From: Syncephalis fuscata S228
Taxonomy: Eukaryota > Fungi > Zoopagomycota
Assembly: GCA_025786725.1 (NCBI GenBank)
Contig: JAHLTZ010000015.1
Span: 496,001 to 560,000 of the forward strand
Direction of reading: 5' to 3'
Length of the DNA: 64,000 nt
The position numbers and the translations under genes are program-made. Numbering within the stretch: the first letter of the stretch is position 1; the number at the start of each line of letters is the position of its first letter. Below the pieces are notes generated by a model that searched no databases, was not told where the DNA came from, and saw nothing but the letters and a program-made list of their open reading frames with translations. Shown piece after piece: positions 15,546 through 48,113 of this stretch.

Positions 15546-16618
15546 AACAATTACAATTAAATGAAATAGCAATAACGAGAAAGAGATATGTAAAATGTAT
15601 GTGATACAATGTTAACTGATTTAGTCTTGTTCTAACATGACCGCTAAAGATTGGTTCAATATGGTCTTACACCTTCAACTTGATTTATTCGTTTAATTAT
15701 ACTGGATATCTAGTTTAAGCAGGATATACATGCTATTATTAAATTCAAATCAAGACATAATAATAAATCCCATTAAATCCAAGAATAAATGACCTATTCA
15801 ACCATGCAAATGATAACATATTTGTGTACTTTATCAATTTGCTAACTTGCTTGCCATATAGTATGTGTTTTATAAGTTGGCATACTAATGCAACTGCTAA
15901 AATATCCAGATAAGACTAATATAAATCTATTAACGAATAAAGAACAAGTCAGCGGCAGTTATGCGTTACCCAAAGATTAGTTTTATTAATGTAGTAATAT
16001 TTTACTGTTTATTTAGTTAACAGTAGTATTAAATGACTGATCATGCAGTTCAATCGGCAATAATTGATTTTTATTATTATATTAATTTCAAGATGAATTG
16101 CAATGAATACAAGCTAATATTATTTCGGTATTATTCATAATATACTTGTAAATACAGTCGATTACAATGCTAGCATGTATTTATAAACTTCAGATTTTAA
16201 ATCGTTATTTAAATAACAATGCTATTATAATCACTTTAGTTTACATTGTTCACTAACATAGCGTATTTTTACAAGTATATTGTCAATATATTTAATCAAT
16301 TAATGTTAGTCTTTGTAAGCAAATAGAATATAAACATAGCTATAATAGCTTAATCAAACACAATTAAGATGGAACCACATGTTTATTACTACAAGTTTGC
16401 ATACTTGATTGCATACAAACAAATACAGACTTGTTGGTAATATAAGAAATCCATCGATTAAGGGTTGAATAAACCAGGGCATTGGCTGGGACTTGGTAGC
16501 TGAGTGGGCTGAGTGGTGTAGTTGTCAAATGATCTTGATTCTTGCCGAATATATACCTAAAATATATATAACTCGCAGTCCAATCATACTATCAGTGCCA
16601 ATATTTTGAATGCGCCAG

Positions 16619-18507
16619 TTATTCTATAGTCATGAGCACATATAAAATATTATATGGTTAGCGTATGAGTTAGCATTATATGATTCTACTTACAATCTAT
16701 TAATACAAGGCATCAAACACGTAAAGTGTACAGTATATATTTAATGCATCGTCAATAATATACAGTATTACTTACGAGCTATTAATACAAGTCATCAAAC
16801 ACAAAGAATATGATAGTTGTTTAACGTATAGCCAATTAATATACAATGCCACTTACATTCTATTATGTTAAGTTATTGATAAGCACAATACAAGTATATA
16901 ATTAGTGTATAGCCAGTTAATATACAATACCATAATTGTTAAGTGAAACCCCCCCCCTCCTGTTTTTTAGGTAAAACAATATGCAAGCCAGTTTAAACAA
17001 GTAGGTCCAAAAACAAGACCTTGGCCAGAATAGCCAAGGAAAAACAATTGGGATCAACTTCAAGAGAATAGTGCTGTGTAGCACCATTCAAAAAAAAGAT
17101 GGTCCCGCATGAGATCTATATGGACCGGATTTTGCGCAAAAACGTAGCAGTCCACCCGTTAAAAGTTTGGAAAAGTCCAAAAATAGTGGGAAGCAGCGCA
17201 AATGCTTTAATTATGTGCAGCGGGGGCTCACAAGCTTTTCAAAATAAAATAAAAATATAATATAATATTACTTACTGCCTATTAATAAAAGTCATCAAAC
17301 ACGCAAAATGTACGGTATGTATTTAGTGCATAGTCAATTAATATACAATAACACTTACCCTCTATTAATACAAGTCATCAAACACGTAAAGTGCACGGTA
17401 TATGCTTAGCGTATAGTCAATTAATATATAATACTACTTACGACCTATTAATACAAGCCATCAAACACACAAAATGTACAATATATGTTTAGTGCATAGT
17501 TAATCAATATATAATGCCACTTACCAACTATTAATACAAGTCATCAAACGCAAAAAGTGCACAGTATATAATTAATGCATAGTCAACTAATATACAATAC
17601 TACTTACAACCTATCAATACAAGTCACCAAACACACAAAATGTACGGCATATGTTTAGTGCATAGTCAATCAATATATAACATTACTTACCAACTATTAA
17701 TATAAGTCATCAAACACACAAAGTGCATGGTATATATTTAGTGCATAGTCGAGCAATATACAATGTCACTTACAAGCTATTAATACAAGTCATCAAACAC
17801 GCAAAGTGCACAGTATATATTTAGTGCATAGTCAATCAATGTACGATATCACTTACGAGCTATTAATACAGGTTATCGAACACACAAAGTGCACAGTATA
17901 TATTTAGTGCATAATCAATTAATTATTACTATTGCTATTTACCTCCTATTAATACGAGTAATCGAACACACAAAGTGCACAGTATATATTTAGTGCATAA
18001 TCAATTAATTATTACTATTGCTATTTACCTCCTATTAATACGAGTAATCGAACACACAAAGTGCACAGTATATATTTAGTGCATAATCAATTAATTATTC
18101 TTATTGTTATTTACCTCCTATTAGTATAGATAGGCAATGTTAGTATCAGCAATATAATTTGTTTTATATTAAACCTACTTTTAACCAATGGTGCTATTTT
18201 ATTTGTTTTACATTAAAAACAACAATTAATTATTATGCCAATAACTATGTGCAATCAACAATTACCATCTATTTGCCATGTCCATTATTTGGATAACATA
18301 CGATAAGCGCTGGAATAATGAGTCAATAATTGCGACTTACCATCTAATATTATCATTGGTTAAACATAATGTTAGCAAACATTTCAAATTTCAAATTTAT
18401 GACTACAACATACCACGACGAACCAAAGTTGGCTTAGCATCCACCATGGCTGTACTGGCTACAAGGGCCACGAGGACGGTGCAGACGACGGCAATAGAAA
18501 GCTTCAT
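16619..18507 (-). CDS. Micro-exon-encoded secreted peptide precursor, copy A (19 exons, 16 of them 3 nt): MKLSIAVVCTVLVALVASTAMVDAKPTLVRR-DDAPLVKR-GGAPFGFGQGKSH
   Basis: Exon 1 at 18507-18414. 3-nt exons at 18341 and 18266. 15-nt exon at 18179-18193. 3-nt exons starting at 18115, 18029, 17943, 17857, 17774, 17691, 17608, 17525, 17442, 17359, 17276, 16857, 16776 and 16694. Last exon from 16623 (AATAA). Every exon is bounded by AG|...|GTA. The spliced frame stays open for 52 codons, then TAA TAA. Confidence 0.8.
16640..18120 (-). repeat. Tandem array of 83-86 bp intron + 3-nt exon units
   Basis: Unit consensus (minus strand) GTAAGTRGTATTRTATATT...ATGCACTAAAYATATAC...TTTGTGTGTTTGATGACTTGTATTAATAG-NNN. 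Exact 83-bp spacing over 17276-17857 and 86-bp spacing over 17857-18115. Confidence 0.95.
16933..17255 (+). mobile_element. SINE copy lacking the tRNA-like head, inside an intron of the micro-exon array
   Basis: Aligns to the body and (TAAAA)n tail of the element at 44948-45342 but lacks its first ~70 nt. Degenerate AATATACAATAC-like flanking duplication. Confidence 0.7.
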
Positions 18508-18644
18508 GGTGAGATTGATTTGTTAAGACAAACAAGTAGAGTGAACGACAGAGTATGTCAAGTGCAAAGTAGGCAGAGTGAGTATTTGGCAGAAAGCAGA
18601 ATGTGATGATGATACTGCTGGTTAGTTGTGTGTATTTTGTGGGC

Positions 18645-18652
18645 TATTTATA
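18645..18652 (-). promoter_or_regulatory. TATA box (TATAAATA) of micro-exon peptide gene copy A
   Basis: About 140 bp upstream of the ATG at 18507. Identical context (ATATTAATATAAATAGCCCACAAAATACAC) in copy B. Confidence 0.55.
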
Positions 18653-18877
18653 TTAATATTTATTTTGAAGCACCAGCAATGTATCCTATAGAATATACCA
18701 TTGAATACAGTGTAAACCAATAAAATGTATTGATATGACGATTTAGCAGGCATGGATGAATAACTGTAGTGTGCATTCTATACGTGCAATGGTAGTCTTC
18801 AAAGGTATTCACATGATGATTTGAAGTATGCGTATAGCAATGTACTAATGACATGCTAATGTGCAACCATGCCCTTG

Positions 18878-19630
18878 ATTCAACCTGTTTGGCTTTTGCT
18901 CAGATGACGCGGCGAACCTAACCACCTGGTACATCTATGGTAGAAATTTGTGTACTATTCTTTACAATATCGTACATGGTTTGAACATGTAATGCAAACC
19001 AAATCCATTGATTCTATAGAAGCAATAATGATACGCCTTTGTGTTCTTGCTATTGCTTTTACCGAAAAATTAATCCCCAACTTGACCGTAAGATGCAAAC
19101 TGAAACAACTGGTTCTACAGAAATAATGATGCTCCGTTGTTGTTTCTTTACTTTAACCTGCTTACCATTTGCACAAAGGACCCGACAATCTCAATCATTC
19201 AGTACACCTATGGTAGAAATTCGTGTACTATTCTTTACAATATCGTACATGGTTTGACCATGCAATGCAAACCAAGTTCATTGATTCTATAGAAGCAATG
19301 ATGATACGCATTTGTGTTCTTGCTATTGCTTTTACCGAAAAATTAATCCCCAACTTGACCGTAAGACGCAAACTGAAACAATTGGTTTTACAGAAATAAT
19401 GATGCTCCGTTGTTGTTTCTTTACTTTAACCTGCTTAACATTTGCACAAAGGACCCGACAATCTCAATCATTCAGTACATCTATGGTAGAAATCCATGTA
19501 CTAATATTTACTGTACTGTGCATGATTTGACCATACAATACAAACTGAGTCTATTGGTTCTATAGAAGCAGTAGTAACACAACAATGTGTTTTGCTGTTG
19601 CTTTTACCGAAACATTTTAATCCCCAATAT
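18878..19630. repeat. ~273-bp tandem repeat (about 2.5 copies) upstream of peptide gene A
   Basis: TACAYCTATGGTAGAAAT recurs at ~18930, 19203 and 19476. The duplicated ORFs at 19039 and 19312 are 273 bp apart. Confidence 0.9.
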
Positions 19631-20139
19631 TTGCATCCTTTCAAACTGCGCATAACTCGTAAGATAGTGCATTGCCTTTGAACAAACCCCGATATAATCT
19701 TTTTGTGGAATTAGGTCTGTTTTGACACCAAACTGCATTCTCTTCATTTTATAGACGACTACAAGGTTTATTAATAGTCGGTAAATAAAAGCTATTTATT
19801 ATTATTTCAAACTGCACAACACATATACAAAAGCAACATTAATAAATTGAGTTTCTTTACATACCTATAATGTTGTGCATAAGCCAGTTACAATGATTAA
19901 ATCGTGCAATATATTGGTTGGTTCATGTGACCATTCTACTTGCCATTGCAGCTTAGCTACAAAAATTACCAATTTATTTTTAGCACTGTCTTACTAATCA
20001 TTGATACAGGCCTTATCGCTATCAGTCAATTCCTGTTATTAATTATTGGCTGCTGCGTAATGGTATTCCCGATAATGAAGCACTAAACTCGAGTATTAAT
20101 GGTATATTACTTAGTGGCAACACTGATATACAAGCAACT

Positions 20140-20640
20140 TGTTTGGTTAAACTATACTTTGACTTTTACATTTGTCCCCAAAGCACAATTCATTTCAATT
20201 AGACTCATGCCATTATTATGCACAACATAGTTATATTATTTTCTATTAAAATGTTGTTAATAAACTGATTTAAATAAATAATGTAACATGTTATTTGGTT
20301 TCTTTAAAACATTCGAGGCCGATTATTATTGTTGTTGGACATGTATAGAAAGATTAATCGAATATTAATAGAAGCCATACGATTGCAATTCCATATTGTT
20401 CTGTATTTGTTGCATCTACGTACAGCATGGATTCTTGCGTTTGAATGGTCTGTTTTATTTTCCAATCTTCTAGTATTGCATTTTGTGCATATTTAATTAC
20501 ATTATTGTATTGATAATTACACATGAATTGCTTAATGTTGGATGCAATATTATACATGTTATAGTAATAAATGGGTGTTTAATTGTATTTAAAAGTGTTG
20601 AGAGGTGAAATGGATAAATAAAAATGTAAGAGTCAAAATA
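20140..20640 (+). repeat. Diverged partial copy of the dispersed element family also at 30680-31740, 34590-34800 and 46740-48113
   Basis: Shared strings GCACAACATAGTTATATT, CATGTRTAGAAAGATT, GCATCTACGTACAGCATG and AATTACACATGAATT. Confidence 0.75.
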
Positions 20641-21002
20641 TAGTAGCTTCGTACTTAAATAACAACTTAACGAGAACTATTTAATTTATTATAATAATTA
20701 TAGTTTATTGTAGATTTACATCCCAAATTATCAAGCATTTAAGATAAAGTATATGGAGCAAGATTGCAACAATGGGACTTAATAATAGTGTTAAAGATAT
20801 TCTTAACAGATTATGAATCCATGGTAACATTTTAATATAGTCTCAAAAAATATGGCTATCTAAAAATGACCACTTTTGACACCAGATGAACAATTTGTTT
20901 TAATAACGTTTAGTTTTTTGTTAACCATTGCATTTCAGTAAACCTTTTTTATAAAAGTAAAGGTCGTCGACTATAACTACGCGATAGCTTCTCTATTTCA
21001 CA

Positions 21003-30099: not shown

Positions 30100-30679
30100 A
30101 CATTACCTCATTCAAGATGAATCGTTTTTTTTGAAATTGTGATTTTTACTTAATTTTTTCTTTACTACTTGTTTTTGCTGAAATAACGAACAATTGCCAT
30201 ACTTTAGTTTTTCTTTCTACGTTTTTTATTTCATTTCAATGAACATTACTTATGAAAACACAGCTACTACTTAAACAGCTACTATTTAAATTGTTGATGC
30301 ACACTACATTGGCACCAACAAGCAATATGATATTTTTAGTAATTATTACTCTATAACATTATCAGCTATCTGGTAATTTACCAATTTTGATATATTAAAG
30401 CATTTTTGGTATAGTGGAATTCTTAGTAATATTTGCAATTGTCCACATATTATGCATTAACATTTCAATATTAGAATAATGCTATTGTTTATTAGACGTA
30501 CTTTATATTTATATTTATATGCCATTAAAACGCGTTTTTAGACTGGATAAATCTCTGTTGTTTTAATCAAATTGGCATTTTACAATAGATTAGTAATACT
30601 GCTGATATAATTTGTTTTTATTGTTATAATGAATTATAATGATACTATAAAATAAAGTAACATTTATAAACATGGCTAA

Positions 30680-31737
30680 ACTTTACTTTGCCTTTCACGT
30701 TTTGAGTCCCCAAAGTAAAATTTGTTTCAATCAAAGTCATGCCGTTATTATGCACAACATAGTTATATTGTTTCCTATTAAAATATTGTTAATAAATTGA
30801 TTTAAATAAAAAATGTAACATACTATTTGATTTTGAAAAAAATATTTGAGATTAATTATTATTGTTATTGGCCATGTGTAGAAAGATTGATTGATATTAA
30901 TAGAAATCCTTGATTGCAATTCCATGTCATTCTGCATTTGTTGTTATTGCATCTACGTACAGCATGAATTCCTGCATCCAAATGCTTTCCTGTATATTTT
31001 AATATTCTGCTATTGCATTTTAAGCATATTTGTGATGTAAGATCAATATCAATATAATTATTATAAAAGTCGTTTATTAAACAACCACTTTTCCTATAGC
31101 CAATCTGACTAAATGAAGGACAATATATTTATATTCAAGCAATAATAAAAATAACTAATTAATCACATTGTTGTATTGACAATTACACATGAATTGATTA
31201 ATGTTAGATGCAGTATTATACATGAAATATTAATAAATAAATGTTTAGTTGTGTCTAAAGCATTAAGAAAAAGAGTGTGAAATGGGTAAATAAAGATTGC
31301 AAAAGTCAAATTACAATAGTTTACTAATATTCAATAATTGCTAAGTAGACTCATGTGATTCAGTGTCAAAAAATCAAAGCTAACATCCTTTACTTGATTG
31401 AACTACGCATTTATTGTCCTACTAGACATGGAACTGGATGGTAAGTTATATTAAGTATTTAATTATAATGCTTTGAATACTTTACAGCAACAATAACATG
31501 GATTAACATTTATTTATTTATTATATTTTATTGTAAGTAATATGAAGTACTGTAACATTTATTAACACTAACATTAGACATTAAAAATTGCGCGGGCTGG
31601 TTCAACTAATTCAATTGGAGTTGATGTGCCACTGCTTCAACAAACCTCTTCTCAGTAGTAAAAACTGATCAACAGTTTATTTGAGTTATGGATTTTTTGT
31701 CCCCAGTTTAAGGATAGGGAGTAAGACTAAAATAGCT
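30680..31737 (+). mobile_element. Non-autonomous internally deleted derivative of the Fanzor-carrying element
   Basis: 30800-31510 is nearly identical to 46750-47460. It then joins directly to the tail found downstream of the Fanzor stop (47925-48113), with no Fanzor coding remnant. Confidence 0.65.
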
Positions 31738-34342: not shown

Positions 34343-34589
34343 TCATTCACCACCCACCATCATGTTTAATAGATTGAGTGTTATTAAAAATAGCCATTTT
34401 AACCATAAATTATACTAAATGGCTAATAAATTCAATTAGATTGTATAATATTGTTAAATGACATACAATATTTATATTAATACAACAGCACTAATACAAT
34501 CAAATAGAACAATTAACCAAATAATTATTGATATCATTGCTAAAATGGTTGTAATTATAGTGAATGTAGCTCATTGTAATATGTTAATA

Positions 34590-34800
34590 TTCGATCAATC
34601 TTTCTACACATGGCTAACAACAATAACAATCGGCCTCAAATGTTTTAAAGTAGCCAAATAGTATGTTACATTTTTTATTTAAATCAATTTATTAACAATA
34701 TTTTAATAGGAAACAATATAATCATGTTGCGCATAATCGCACAACTTTAATTGGAACAAATTTTACTCTAGGGACTTAAAATAAGAAAGTCAAAGTAAAA
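34590..34800 (-). repeat. Inverted copy of the 5' part of the same element family
   Basis: The reverse complement matches 30680-30900 (AAACATTTGAGGCCGATTGTTATTGTT...TGTGTAGAAAGATTGAT). Confidence 0.75.
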
Positions 34801-36143
34801 CCCAACTAAACAAACAAATATAATAACGTATTACAATTGTTTGCATTGCTACATTGACATTCATGTTAATTATTTAATAGTAGTACCAATAGCTTATTTA
34901 GTTAATTGCCATTTTACTTTTCTATTACTTTACTTTATTCTACTATATAATAGGCATGCTATATACAAGAGCACTGCCTGTTTGTTGCTAACTCTAACAT
35001 TTTTATCGCCATGTTTTATATTGTATTCATGTTATTATATATTATAGCTTATTTAGCTTAATAAAAAAAGTTGTTTTTTATTTATACGTCCGATTCGAAT
35101 AGCGCACCATTTCTGCCATTGCTAATTTCAATTTCTTTGGCAGTTTCCAATTCTGTACAGAGACTAGAATTGATCCCCGCTGGCATTAATGTGCCTGGAT
35201 GGCCGACAGGCACTTACTTGTTTTCTGTTCTATATTGAGCCTGCACGCACATACACACACGCACGCACACGCAGGCGCTAAAACACCTCCCAGTCACAGT
35301 CTTTAAACTTATCCTACTCTTGTACAGTCGCCTTGTTGTTAGTATTGTCTCATCTCGCAACATCTCTTGACTATTGTTTGGTCTATTTATGTTATATTTC
35401 TTACTTATAAACTATTTAACTGGCAGGCTTATTGTACAGCGTCTTTATTCTTCATTATCGGTCGATTTATAGCAGCAACGTTTTGCACCAGTACCACTGT
35501 AACACCGTTATTGCAAGGCAAGTACATAGCGAATATTAGTGTGCCGAAAGAGATGGCGGTCATGGCGTAAACGTATTTTGACTTCTATATCTATTTATAC
35601 ACTGTAAACTACTGCCTCCATCACCGCTACTGCGACATAGTTCGCCCTTTAACTTGCTTACTTACCATCATTGTTCCTTTTAAGTGCATGTTGCATGAGA
35701 ACGTGTACCTGTTTCCACTCCCCGCAGCTCCTTACTCTTTCTCGCCTTTTCTTTTTTCAGCTGAACTACACAGTAAAGTGGATAATTATTATTATTATTA
35801 TTATTATTGCTGCTATTGCTGCATTTACTGCTACTGCTATTATAGCGCCTTATTTATGGCTTGAAAAACGCTACAGCAGCTCAACCTACTACCTTTGGCT
35901 GACTTTATATCTAGACTATTATACCGTTTAGCGCCAAAGTGTACTTCTTTAATAGCGACAACCTGTCTTCTTTCTATCCGTGTATGTAGGCCATTTGAAC
36001 GTACAGAGTAATACGTGTAGTCCAATTGACCTTCTCCAGCCGTACTGAGATTTTGGCCAACATCATTTACAACCAGCCGACTTCATCTCCGGCTTGTATT
36101 CGTTTTTTATTAATAACTACAATTTTATCATATTGTTTTCATC

Positions 36144-44455: not shown

Positions 44456-45580
44456 ATGAAGCTTTCTATCGTCGTCGTCGTCTGCACCATTGTCGTGGCC
44501 TTTGTAGCCAGTACAGCCATGGTGGATGCTAGTCCAGCTTTGGTTCGTCGTGGTATGTTGTAGTCATAATAAATTTGAAATTTGAAATGTTTGCTAACAT
44601 TATGTTTAACCAACGATAATATTAGATGGTAAGTCGCAATTATTGACTCATTATTCCAGCGCTTATCGTATGTTATCCAAATAATGGACATGGCAAATAG
44701 TTGGTAAGTTGATTGCACATAGTTATTGGCATAATAACTGATCGTTGTTTTTAATGTAAAATAAATAAAATAGCACCATTGGCTAAAAGTAGGTTTAATA
44801 TAAAACAAATTATATTGCTGATACTAACATTGCCTATCTATTCTAATAGGAGGTAAATGACAATAAGAATACTTAATTGGCCATTTAATTAAATGCTGTT
44901 TATATTACCAAACTAGCACCACAAGATGGTAAGTAGTATTGTATATTATTTTATTTTATTTTGAAAAGCTTGTGAGCCCCCGCTGCACATAATTAAAGCA
45001 TTTGCGCTGCTTCCCACTATTTTTGGACTTTTCCAAACTTTTAACGGGTGGACTGCCACGTTTTTGTGCAAATCCGGTCCATGTAGATCTCACGCGGGGG
45101 CCATCTTCTTTTGAATAGTGCCACACTGCACTATTCTCTTGAAGTTGGTCCCAATTGATTTTTCCTCGGCTATTCTGGCCAAAGCCTTGTTTCCGGACCT
45201 ACTTATTGGGTTCTGGTTTGCAATTTGTTAACTAGAAAAAACTGGGAGGATTTCTACTTAAAGATTGATTTAAACTAAGGTTTAAACCCGGAACCTTCAA
45301 CTCGGGAAACGCTACCTTACCTACTGGGCTAGTAACGCTCCCGTAGTATTGTATATTGATTGAATATGCACTAAATATATACCGTACATTTTGTGTGTTT
45401 GATGACTTGTATTAATAGGCGGTAAGTAGTATTGTATATTGATTGACTATGCACTAAATATATACCGTACATTTTGTGTGTTTGATAATCTGTATTAATA
45501 GAAGGTAAGTAGAAGCATATAATGCCAACTCATACGCTAACCATATGATGTTTATATATGTACTCATGATTATAGAATAA
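44456..45580 (+). CDS. Micro-exon-encoded secreted peptide precursor, copy B (9 exons): MKLSIVVVVCTIVVAFVASTAMVDASPALVRR-DVAPLAKR-APQDGEE
   Basis: Exons 44456-44552, 44626-44628 (ATG), 44701-44703 (TTG), 44774-44788, 44850-44852 (GAG), 44917-44928, 45419-45421 (GCG), 45502-45504 (AAG) and 45576-45580 (AATAA). All introns are GT-AG, phase 1. Open 47-codon frame. Confidence 0.8.
44948..45342 (-). mobile_element. tRNA-derived SINE (395 bp) with a 15-bp target-site duplication
   Basis: Perfect TSD GTAGTATTGTATATT at 44933-44947 and 45343-45357. 5' head with A-box TAGCCCAGTAGG (45331-45320) and B-box-like GGTTTAAACC (~45288-45279). 3' (TAAAA)n tail. Confidence 0.8.
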
Positions 45581-46739: not shown

Positions 46740-48113
46740 AATAATATTAAACATTTAAATAAATAATGTAACATGCCATTTGACTAATTTGAAACATTTG
46801 AGATTAATTATTATTGTTATTGGCCATGTGTAGAAAGATTGATTGATATTAATAGAAATCCTTGATTGCAATTCCATGTCATTCTGCATTTGTTGTTATT
46901 GCATCTACGTACAGCATGAATTCCTGCATCCAAATGCTTTCCTGTATATTTTAATATTCTGCTATTGCATTTTAAGCATATTTGTGATGTAAGATCAATA
47001 TCAATATAATTATTATAAAAGTCGTTTATTAAACAACCACTTTTCCTATAGCCAATCTGACTAAATGAAGGACAATATATTTATATTCAAGCAATAATAA
47101 AGATAACTATTTAATCACATTATTGTATTGATAATTACACATGAATTAATTAATATTAGTGCAATATTATACATGAAATATTAATAAATAAATGTTTAGT
47201 TGTGTCTAAAGCATTAAGAAAAAGAGTGTGAAATGGGTAAATAAAGATTGCAAAAGTCAAATTACAATAGTTTACTAATATTCAATAATTGCTAAGTAGA
47301 CTCATGTGATTCAGTGTCAAAAAATCAAGGCTAACATCCTTTACTTGATTGAACTACGCATTTATTGTCCTACTAGACATGGAACTGGATGGTAAGTTAT
47401 ATTAAATATTTAATTATAATGCTTTGAATACTTTACAGCAACAATAATATGGATTAACATTTATTAGCATATACACTAGCGCATAGTCTCTACCTATTCA
47501 ATTACTTAATAATAAAATTCCACTTATTGCTTTTGGAGCTGCTCGATTTGCCACTTCTATGAAAGGCAAGGTTGCTGGACTGGCCAATCGTTACAGAAAT
47601 GTGCTTAAAACTGCTGAGCGACAAGAACTTTTGGTGATTGCAGATATTGATGAATACAATACATCAAAAGTCTGTTCCAAATGCAAGAAAAAGGAGATGG
47701 CAGGGTTATATCTGGAATAACACAACAGCACAATGCATAGCGTACTTGTTTTTCCAAACAAAAATTGCTGTACGGTATGGCAGTGTGATGTTAATGCTAG
47801 TAGAAACATGCACAGTATATTCAGTACAATGGCCAGTGGTGCACCAAGGCCTTCTGATTTCTTACCACCTATTAGTATAAGAAATCAAACTGACACTATT
47901 GTATCAACATCATAATCAAATGTAGAGTTTTATTGTAAGTAGCATGAAATACTATTTAACATTTATTAATACTAATATTGGATATTGGAAATAGTGCAGA
48001 TTGATTAAGACACTGATTAATTCAATCGGAGTTGATGTGGCACTGCTTCAACAAACCATTTCTCAGTAGTAAAAACGGATCGACAGCTTATTGTTTGAGT
48101 TATCGACCTTTGT
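46740..48113 (+). mobile_element. Decayed Fanzor-carrying element
   Basis: Repeat-family 5' part shared with 30800-31510, a Fanzor coding remnant, and a conserved 3' tail. Confidence 0.65.
47514..47915 (+). pseudogene. Fanzor (eukaryotic TnpB-like RNA-guided nuclease) C-terminal fragment: RuvC-II, zinc finger and RuvC-III
   Basis: One frame reads KIPLIAFGAARF...IDEYNTSKVCSKC...*...HSVLVFPNKNCCTVWQCDVNASRNM...PRPSDF. This matches the Fanzor/TnpB pattern DExxTSxxCxxC...CxxxW[NQ]RDVNA. In-frame TAA at 47718. Confidence 0.8.

Follow-up and report, generated by a model that had tools for sequence, protein, structure and literature searches.

An apparently undescribed gene family of Syncephalis fuscata whose coding sequence is split into tandem arrays of 3-nt exons

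In conotoxins and other venom prepropeptides, which form large families, the exon for signal and propeptide is conserved, cleavage is dibasic and the mature region is hypervariable and often rich in cysteines. Closer in gene layout are the micro-exon genes (MEGs) of schistosomes, in which a long 5' exon coding for the signal peptide is followed by small symmetric central exons and a long 3' exon, and which are further characterized by multigene expansion, fast protein evolution, presence in the parasite secretome and transposable elements inside the genes (PMC4671649, PMC4350168). Among fungal precursors, the KEPs are defined by at least three similar motifs separated by KR, RR or KK (Le Marquer 2019; PMC6339444). 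Exons as small as 3 nt have been described in Coprinopsis cinerea, with a total of 27 in 26 genes (PMC12230235). A search of the literature outside subscription journals (Syncephalis, Rhizophagus kinase and consecutive 3-nt microexons) gave no description of tandem arrays of one-codon exons, in agreement with the first-pass annotation of the DNA analyzed here, which knew of no such fungal system, though isolated 3-nt exons are known in fungi.

The sequence under study is a stretch of 64,000 nt from Syncephalis fuscata (the window), which contains on its minus strand, at positions 16619 to 18507, a gene of 19 exons: a signal and propeptide exon, sixteen exons of 3 nt, one of 15 nt and an exon with the stop (Table 1). 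The micro-exon unit reads, on this strand, as an acceptor AG, three bases and a donor GTAAGT or GTAAAT, and the 18 tandemly repeated introns, of about 80 nt, measure 61 to 83 nt each except for intron 15, with 416 nt. The middle of the gene was scored by Tandem Repeats Finder as an 83-nt repeat of ten copies. All 17 internal exons have either 3 or 15 nt, and each exon listed in the first-pass annotation was found at its claimed place, flanked by an AG acceptor and a GT donor. The micro-exons are in phase 1, so that every codon is made of one base of one exon and two of the next. Splicing with a script from the window coordinates produced a 52-aa prepropeptide with the end K-S-H-stop-stop, identical to the product read at first pass, including the 18 introns and the stop at the last junction. 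The hydrophobic core of exon 1, from which the signal peptide was judged by eye, is kept in 25 paralogs. A second dibasic site combines the Lys of exon 4 with an Arg codon formed across the following junction, which bears out the earlier remark that the KR site exists only across a splice junction. An alternative terminal acceptor is possible at 16590-16589 and would change the end to H-L-stop, but most paralogs keep the acceptor proposed at first pass (70 nt from the last donor, with the stop 2 nt in). We consider it almost certain that this gene structure is real.

Table 1. Features of the window related to the micro-exon gene and its second copy (positions in the 64,000-nt stretch).
Feature	Position	Strand	Remarks
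TATA-like box upstream of the gene	18645..18652	-	Identified by sequence; also precedes the paralog at 44.3 kb; putative function
Exon 1, coding part, 94 nt: signal peptide and short propeptide to Arg-Arg, then one G	18414..18507	-	Phase-1 donor
Exons 2 and 3, 3 nt each (18343-18341, 18268-18266)	18266..18343	-	Exon 3 joined to exon 4 in record 4; contigs of paralogs run from exon 1 into these exons
Exon 4, 15 nt, second propeptide segment	18179..18193	-	Letters found between the sides of joint 17947-18266; kept in several paralogs
Eleven consecutive 3-nt exons in an 83-nt tandem repeat (unit = intron + micro-exon)	17276..18117	-	Starts: 18117, 18031, 17945, 17859, 17776, 17693, 17610, 17527, 17444, 17361, 17278; exons 5-7 joined in run X1
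5'-truncated SINE-like element inside intron 15	16963..17264	+	Antisense to the gene
Final three 3-nt exons	16694..16859	-	Starts: 16859, 16778, 16696
Terminal exon with the stop (formed across the last junction, then repeated), the 3' UTR and AATAAA at 16387-16382	16382..16623	-	Depth high over 16382-16663 in X1
273-nt tandem repeat upstream of the gene	18879..19627		Within the duplicated block 16200-20101
Second family member: same exon 1, six 3-nt exons and a 15-nt exon, full SINE-like insert	44456..45580	+	

To see the array in transcripts, we relied on X1, the sole run found, which is public, available as contigs and presumably RNA. Summed over contigs, its depth was in the hundreds of thousands for exon 1 as well as for the last exon, approximately a hundred- to a thousandfold lower over most introns and zero past the 3' end, a pattern typical of RNA. 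Record 4 of this run (158 nt, depth 207) is partly spliced, with five exons joined in the predicted order. Its first part matches the end of intron 2 followed by exon 3; the next 19 letters spell exons 4 and 5 plus the opening base of exon 6, and the rest runs on through exon 7, the entire intron 7 and exon 8, with zero mismatches. As introns 3 to 6 are gone while 2 and 7 are kept, this record represents an intermediate of splicing in which three successive 3-nt exons are already joined, and it shows that introns are not removed strictly from 5' to 3'. X1 contigs do not distinguish this gene from a copy on C179 that is 98% identical and has the same exons. From position 18414, the end of exon 1, nine further contigs pass into micro-exon chains of paralogs, and two enter the last exon at 16588, preceded by 16 letters that match the last five micro-exons of one paralog (L041). 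The splicing of the micro-exons, proposed at first pass from the letters only, is thus seen in these contigs as joined 3-nt exons. Among the X1 joints listed, none connects exon 1 or exon 4 straight to the last exon, and neither of two patterns named beforehand as evidence against the gene, such a bypass of the array or a lack of expression, was seen; a fully spliced record of this exact gene was not among the X1 records listed.

Public annotation illustrates how easily such a gene is overlooked. The deposited protein KAI9595475.1 (50 aa, hypothetical protein) can be threaded onto the locus with only one intron and then runs into the sequence of intron 2, indicating that the public model is wrong after its second exon, and the expectation that gene prediction would fail here has thus come true as a 50-aa intron read-through. 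The flanking open reading frames encode an Alg9-like mannosyltransferase, a kinesin, a WD40 protein and a porphobilinogen deaminase, an exon of which has its closest match in Syncephalis, together with a short-chain-dehydrogenase-like frame at 21 kb (identified by eye); none of these flanking frames is a DUF3328/UstYa or other RiPP tailoring gene.

What had been described at first pass as a single gene does hold as a gene, but its scope was underestimated, since it is one of about 180. The pattern at the end of exon 1 had 179 matches in the genome compared to 1 for the control, and the strict unit pattern WTAATAG-NNN-GTAAGT matched 2372 times versus 3 for its reversed control, a figure that must be taken as a lower bound for the number of micro-exon units. 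Analysis of the paralogs covered about 190 kb of the genome, with many loci followed only to 1.5 kb. When 30 family members were parsed with exon length unconstrained, 423 of the 433 internal exons had exactly 3 nt and the remainder mostly 6, 9, 12 or 15 nt; some units had GC donors and some had lost the acceptor. Exon 1 is conserved: identity per column is 79%, M, K, VDA, P and RR do not vary, and in all readable copies a donor follows. The predicted mature parts, on the other hand, are unrelated between members, being Pro-rich, Cys-rich or Gly-rich, and those S. fuscata proteins in public databases that share exon 1 likewise have unrelated Cys-rich, Pro-rich or acidic mature parts, some with four to eight cysteines. 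The 20 matches to an exon-1 profile that we looked up were all S. fuscata proteins except for one ENA sequence. Pfam found no domain in nine of ten deposited family proteins. In the tenth, KAI9594856.1 (P0257), a single-domain von Willebrand factor type C (SVWC, PF15430), scored above the cut-off, makes up the mature part, indicating that the exon-1 cassette can front a folded domain too. An Atlas match for a Cys-rich member (score of 0.76) was not counted as evidence.

Some copies look decayed, with a frameshifted exon 1 (L004), 2-nt units, dead acceptors or, in the second copy of the window, a predicted mature peptide of only four residues. L004 (G000:C57 near 417.9 kb), a twin of paralog L002, seems to be frameshifted in its signal exon and could be either a pseudogene or an assembly error. 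At the other extreme, very long micro-exon arrays (G000:C19:4969-8208 and C24:513888-516645) show higher-order repeats of about 313 nt that comprise four units, which implies periodic tetrapeptide products.

If the array is read across its introns, stops should be avoided where two micro-exons meet. A phase-1 stop requires a unit with T as its last base, followed by one that starts with AA, AG or GA. Over the whole genome, these starts were found in only 5 of 534 adjacent pairs after T, compared to 317 of 1213 after A, C or G, so that about 140 were expected (26%) and the depletion is 28-fold (Fisher P = 7e-49, with paralogs that are not independent). Locally, phase 1 had no stop in 337 junctions against 5.4 expected, while the phase-2 reading had 22. 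The frame that spans the junctions is therefore under strong purifying selection genome-wide, in support of the coding interpretation given at first pass. At the other end of the gene, a stop in the same frame is found within two codons of the terminal exon in 11 of the paralog 3' ends read.

Divergence was measured over ten independent collinear pairs of paralogs. Differences amounted to 1.3% in exon 1, 1.1% in the splice signals and 4.3% in the introns, compared to 20.9% (P = 4e-10) at codon position 1 and 10.9% (P = 0.003) at position 2 of the micro-exons, while the wobble position (7.3%, P = 0.15) was not significantly above the introns. Most of this excess was carried by four of the ten pairs. 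It could reflect exchange of whole units (shuffling) as well as point mutation under positive selection. Whole units, each formed by an intron plus 3 nt, are gained and lost between near-identical paralogs: C361 and C79 have 13 and 8 units at an intron divergence of 1.3%, and C301 differs from C84 by a two-unit duplication, such paralogs being 1.3 to 1.7% apart in their introns.

The arrays also harbor a SINE-like element of about 400 nt, of which a full copy with a tRNA-like head is found in the second family member of the window (44945-45342). It has A- and B-box-like motifs (recognized by eye), a head that folds at a z score of -3.0, an A-rich tail and a target duplication of approximately 15 nt, is present in at least 40 copies and shows high depth in X1. 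Rfam and tRNA scans gave no match. Nine of the ten copies read lie 10 to 15 nt behind a micro-exon donor, in antisense and in different units of different genes, so that the element seems to target the intron unit. At a larger scale, a block of about 3.9 kb (16200-20101) with the gene, its 3' flank and the 273-nt repeat is duplicated, with 98% identity on C179 and 92% and 82% elsewhere on C57. Copies of the family often occur as inverted or dispersed pairs. A separate dispersed repeat of 230 to 500 nt (77 to 81% identity; 20139-20649, 30673-31322, 34584-34813 and 46745-47273) starts at the end of the duplicated block.

A metagenome scan for two adjacent units provided two true look-alikes, with intron units different from those of S. 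fuscata. The first, on AT-rich contigs (16 to 26% GC; L068, L070, L074, L082-L087, L092 and L096), has up to 31 variable predicted 3-nt exons in a run, in several cases upstream of a Glomeromycotina-type protein kinase exon, with the AM fungus Funneliformis geosporum as the best named relative and 1 phase-1 stop versus 7.4 expected. The second, on soil contigs (L081:6072-7190 and L076:2880-3855), consists of a predicted exon for a signal peptide and, after it, 3-nt exons in phase 0 within an unrelated repeat of about 73 nt; its predicted product is rich in Ser, Tyr and Asp, and the adjoining gene is closest to those of the ascomycetes Xylogone and Scytalidium. The GGA arrays also recovered (L067, L073, L079, L088, L090 and L093-L095) were discarded as CRISPR, in which the direct repeat mimics acceptor-GGA-donor. 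To judge from these contigs, the arrays of the AM fungus and the ascomycete suggest independent origins of the architecture, and that other fungal "minisatellites" may be coding.

Ordinary GT-AG splicing of introns of about 80 nt assembles the coding sequence in steps of three bases. We propose that signal peptidase and KEX2, cutting at RR and KR, would release a 13-aa Gly/Phe-rich peptide after the second dibasic site; secretion and KEX2 processing are predictions from the precursor sequence. The 80 nt of near-identical intron might act as a recombination handle for unequal crossing-over, conversion or slippage. As every unit contributes exactly 3 nt and the phase is fixed, the frame would survive any duplication, deletion, conversion or acceptor loss, each of which would alter the peptide by about one residue, and residues could be inserted, deleted or swapped singly. 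The mature peptides would in this way diversify into a venom-like library, with a Gly/Phe-rich member at this locus and Pro-rich or Cys-rich ones elsewhere, possibly deployed in an arms race with host fungi or competing microbes. Syncephalis parasitizes mucoralean fungi, and we infer an arsenal against hosts or competitors as the simplest reading of a large, fast-changing secreted family in a mycoparasite.

This diversification could also be incidental, that is, a self-expanding intron unit that adds 3 nt may have spread within an expanding peptide family as a tolerated by-product, unselected as a generator of diversity. The unrelated units of the AM-fungus kinase gene and the ascomycete gene suggest a generic mutational route of this kind, the SINE-like element targets the unit too, and splicing 18 to 40 introns for each short peptide is costly. 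However, the non-synonymous positions change 2.5 to 5 times faster than the introns, with wobble not significantly different, and about 180 genes retain the architecture, with strong expression, which makes a by-product rather unlikely. We also regard as unlikely that the diversity is created at the RNA level, with 3-nt exons skipped combinatorially so that one gene gives many peptides. MEGs are described as diversifying by skipping (PMC4350168), and any skip would keep the frame here, as the array exons are all multiples of 3 in the same phase. Yet the sole informative X1 record has its three identical-triplet exons all present in order and none skipped, and skipping would make new junction codons, whereas stop avoidance was measured on adjacent pairs. 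Moreover, short introns favor nearest-site pairing.

A role as signals (pheromones, self/non-self or host-recognition cues) instead of weapons is improbable: some 180 genes with unrelated mature parts, many of them Cys-rich, fit a repertoire for defense or attack better, even if the product of 13 aa is pheromone-sized and its signal peptide, dibasic sites and short acidic spacer recall alpha-factor-type precursors (PMC6339444). Finally, a non-coding minisatellite that merely mimics splice sites, as might be imagined from the 83-nt tandem repeat score and from the CRISPR repeats that the same pattern catches by chance in metagenomes, is practically impossible to reconcile with the exons joined in X1, the 28-fold depletion of stops and the conserved in-frame terminal stop.

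The reading we prefer is, in consequence, an expressed family of about 180 secreted prepropeptides diversified through intron handles and serving as a peptide arsenal, an account that as a whole we hold to be somewhat probable. A stronger version, with recombinable cassettes for each amino acid in about 180 genes, selected for an antifungal or antimicrobial library and independently arisen in at least three fungal lineages, is put forward tentatively. The gene family itself is real, expressed, under selection, spread over the genome and apparently undescribed. It has the densest exon-intron structure that we have found, with an intron in nearly every codon and thousands of copies, and offers a natural test bed for how the spliceosome copes with 3-nt exons in long succession and how introns are gained through tandem duplication, a process of which this one genome holds many recent intermediates. 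It also adds about 180 hidden secreted peptides to a mycoparasite, missed or mangled by annotation, some of which may be antifungal or antibacterial leads. If unit-wise recombination is truly a selected source of peptide diversity, this would be categorically new.

Compared with known precursors, KEPs and alpha-factor-type proteins share with the S. fuscata gene a signal peptide and the predicted release of short peptides at RR or KR. However, with only two dibasic sites and without a repeated core, its 52-aa product falls outside the KEP definition, and the repetition is found in the introns rather than in the protein. The tailoring neighbors that accompany dikaritin-type fungal RiPP precursors are missing among the flanking frames. 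The mature peptide of conotoxins lies in one exon, while that of S. fuscata is split at every codon. The 3-nt exons of Coprinopsis are also spliced in a fungus and break gene prediction as they do here, but there is about one per gene, whereas this gene has 14 consecutive ones and the S. fuscata genome at least 2372. The closest likeness is to the MEGs, with the signal peptide in a long 5' exon, symmetric microexons of less than 36 bp, a transposable element inside and family expansion. Unlike MEG exons, which are of mixed size below 36 bp, those of S. fuscata have almost all exactly 3 nt, its introns are short copies of one tandem unit, and the two groups, one fungal and the other from flatworms, have no sequence homology. 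In layout, the S. fuscata gene resembles a MEG pushed to the limit of 3-nt exons, but it does not belong to that group.
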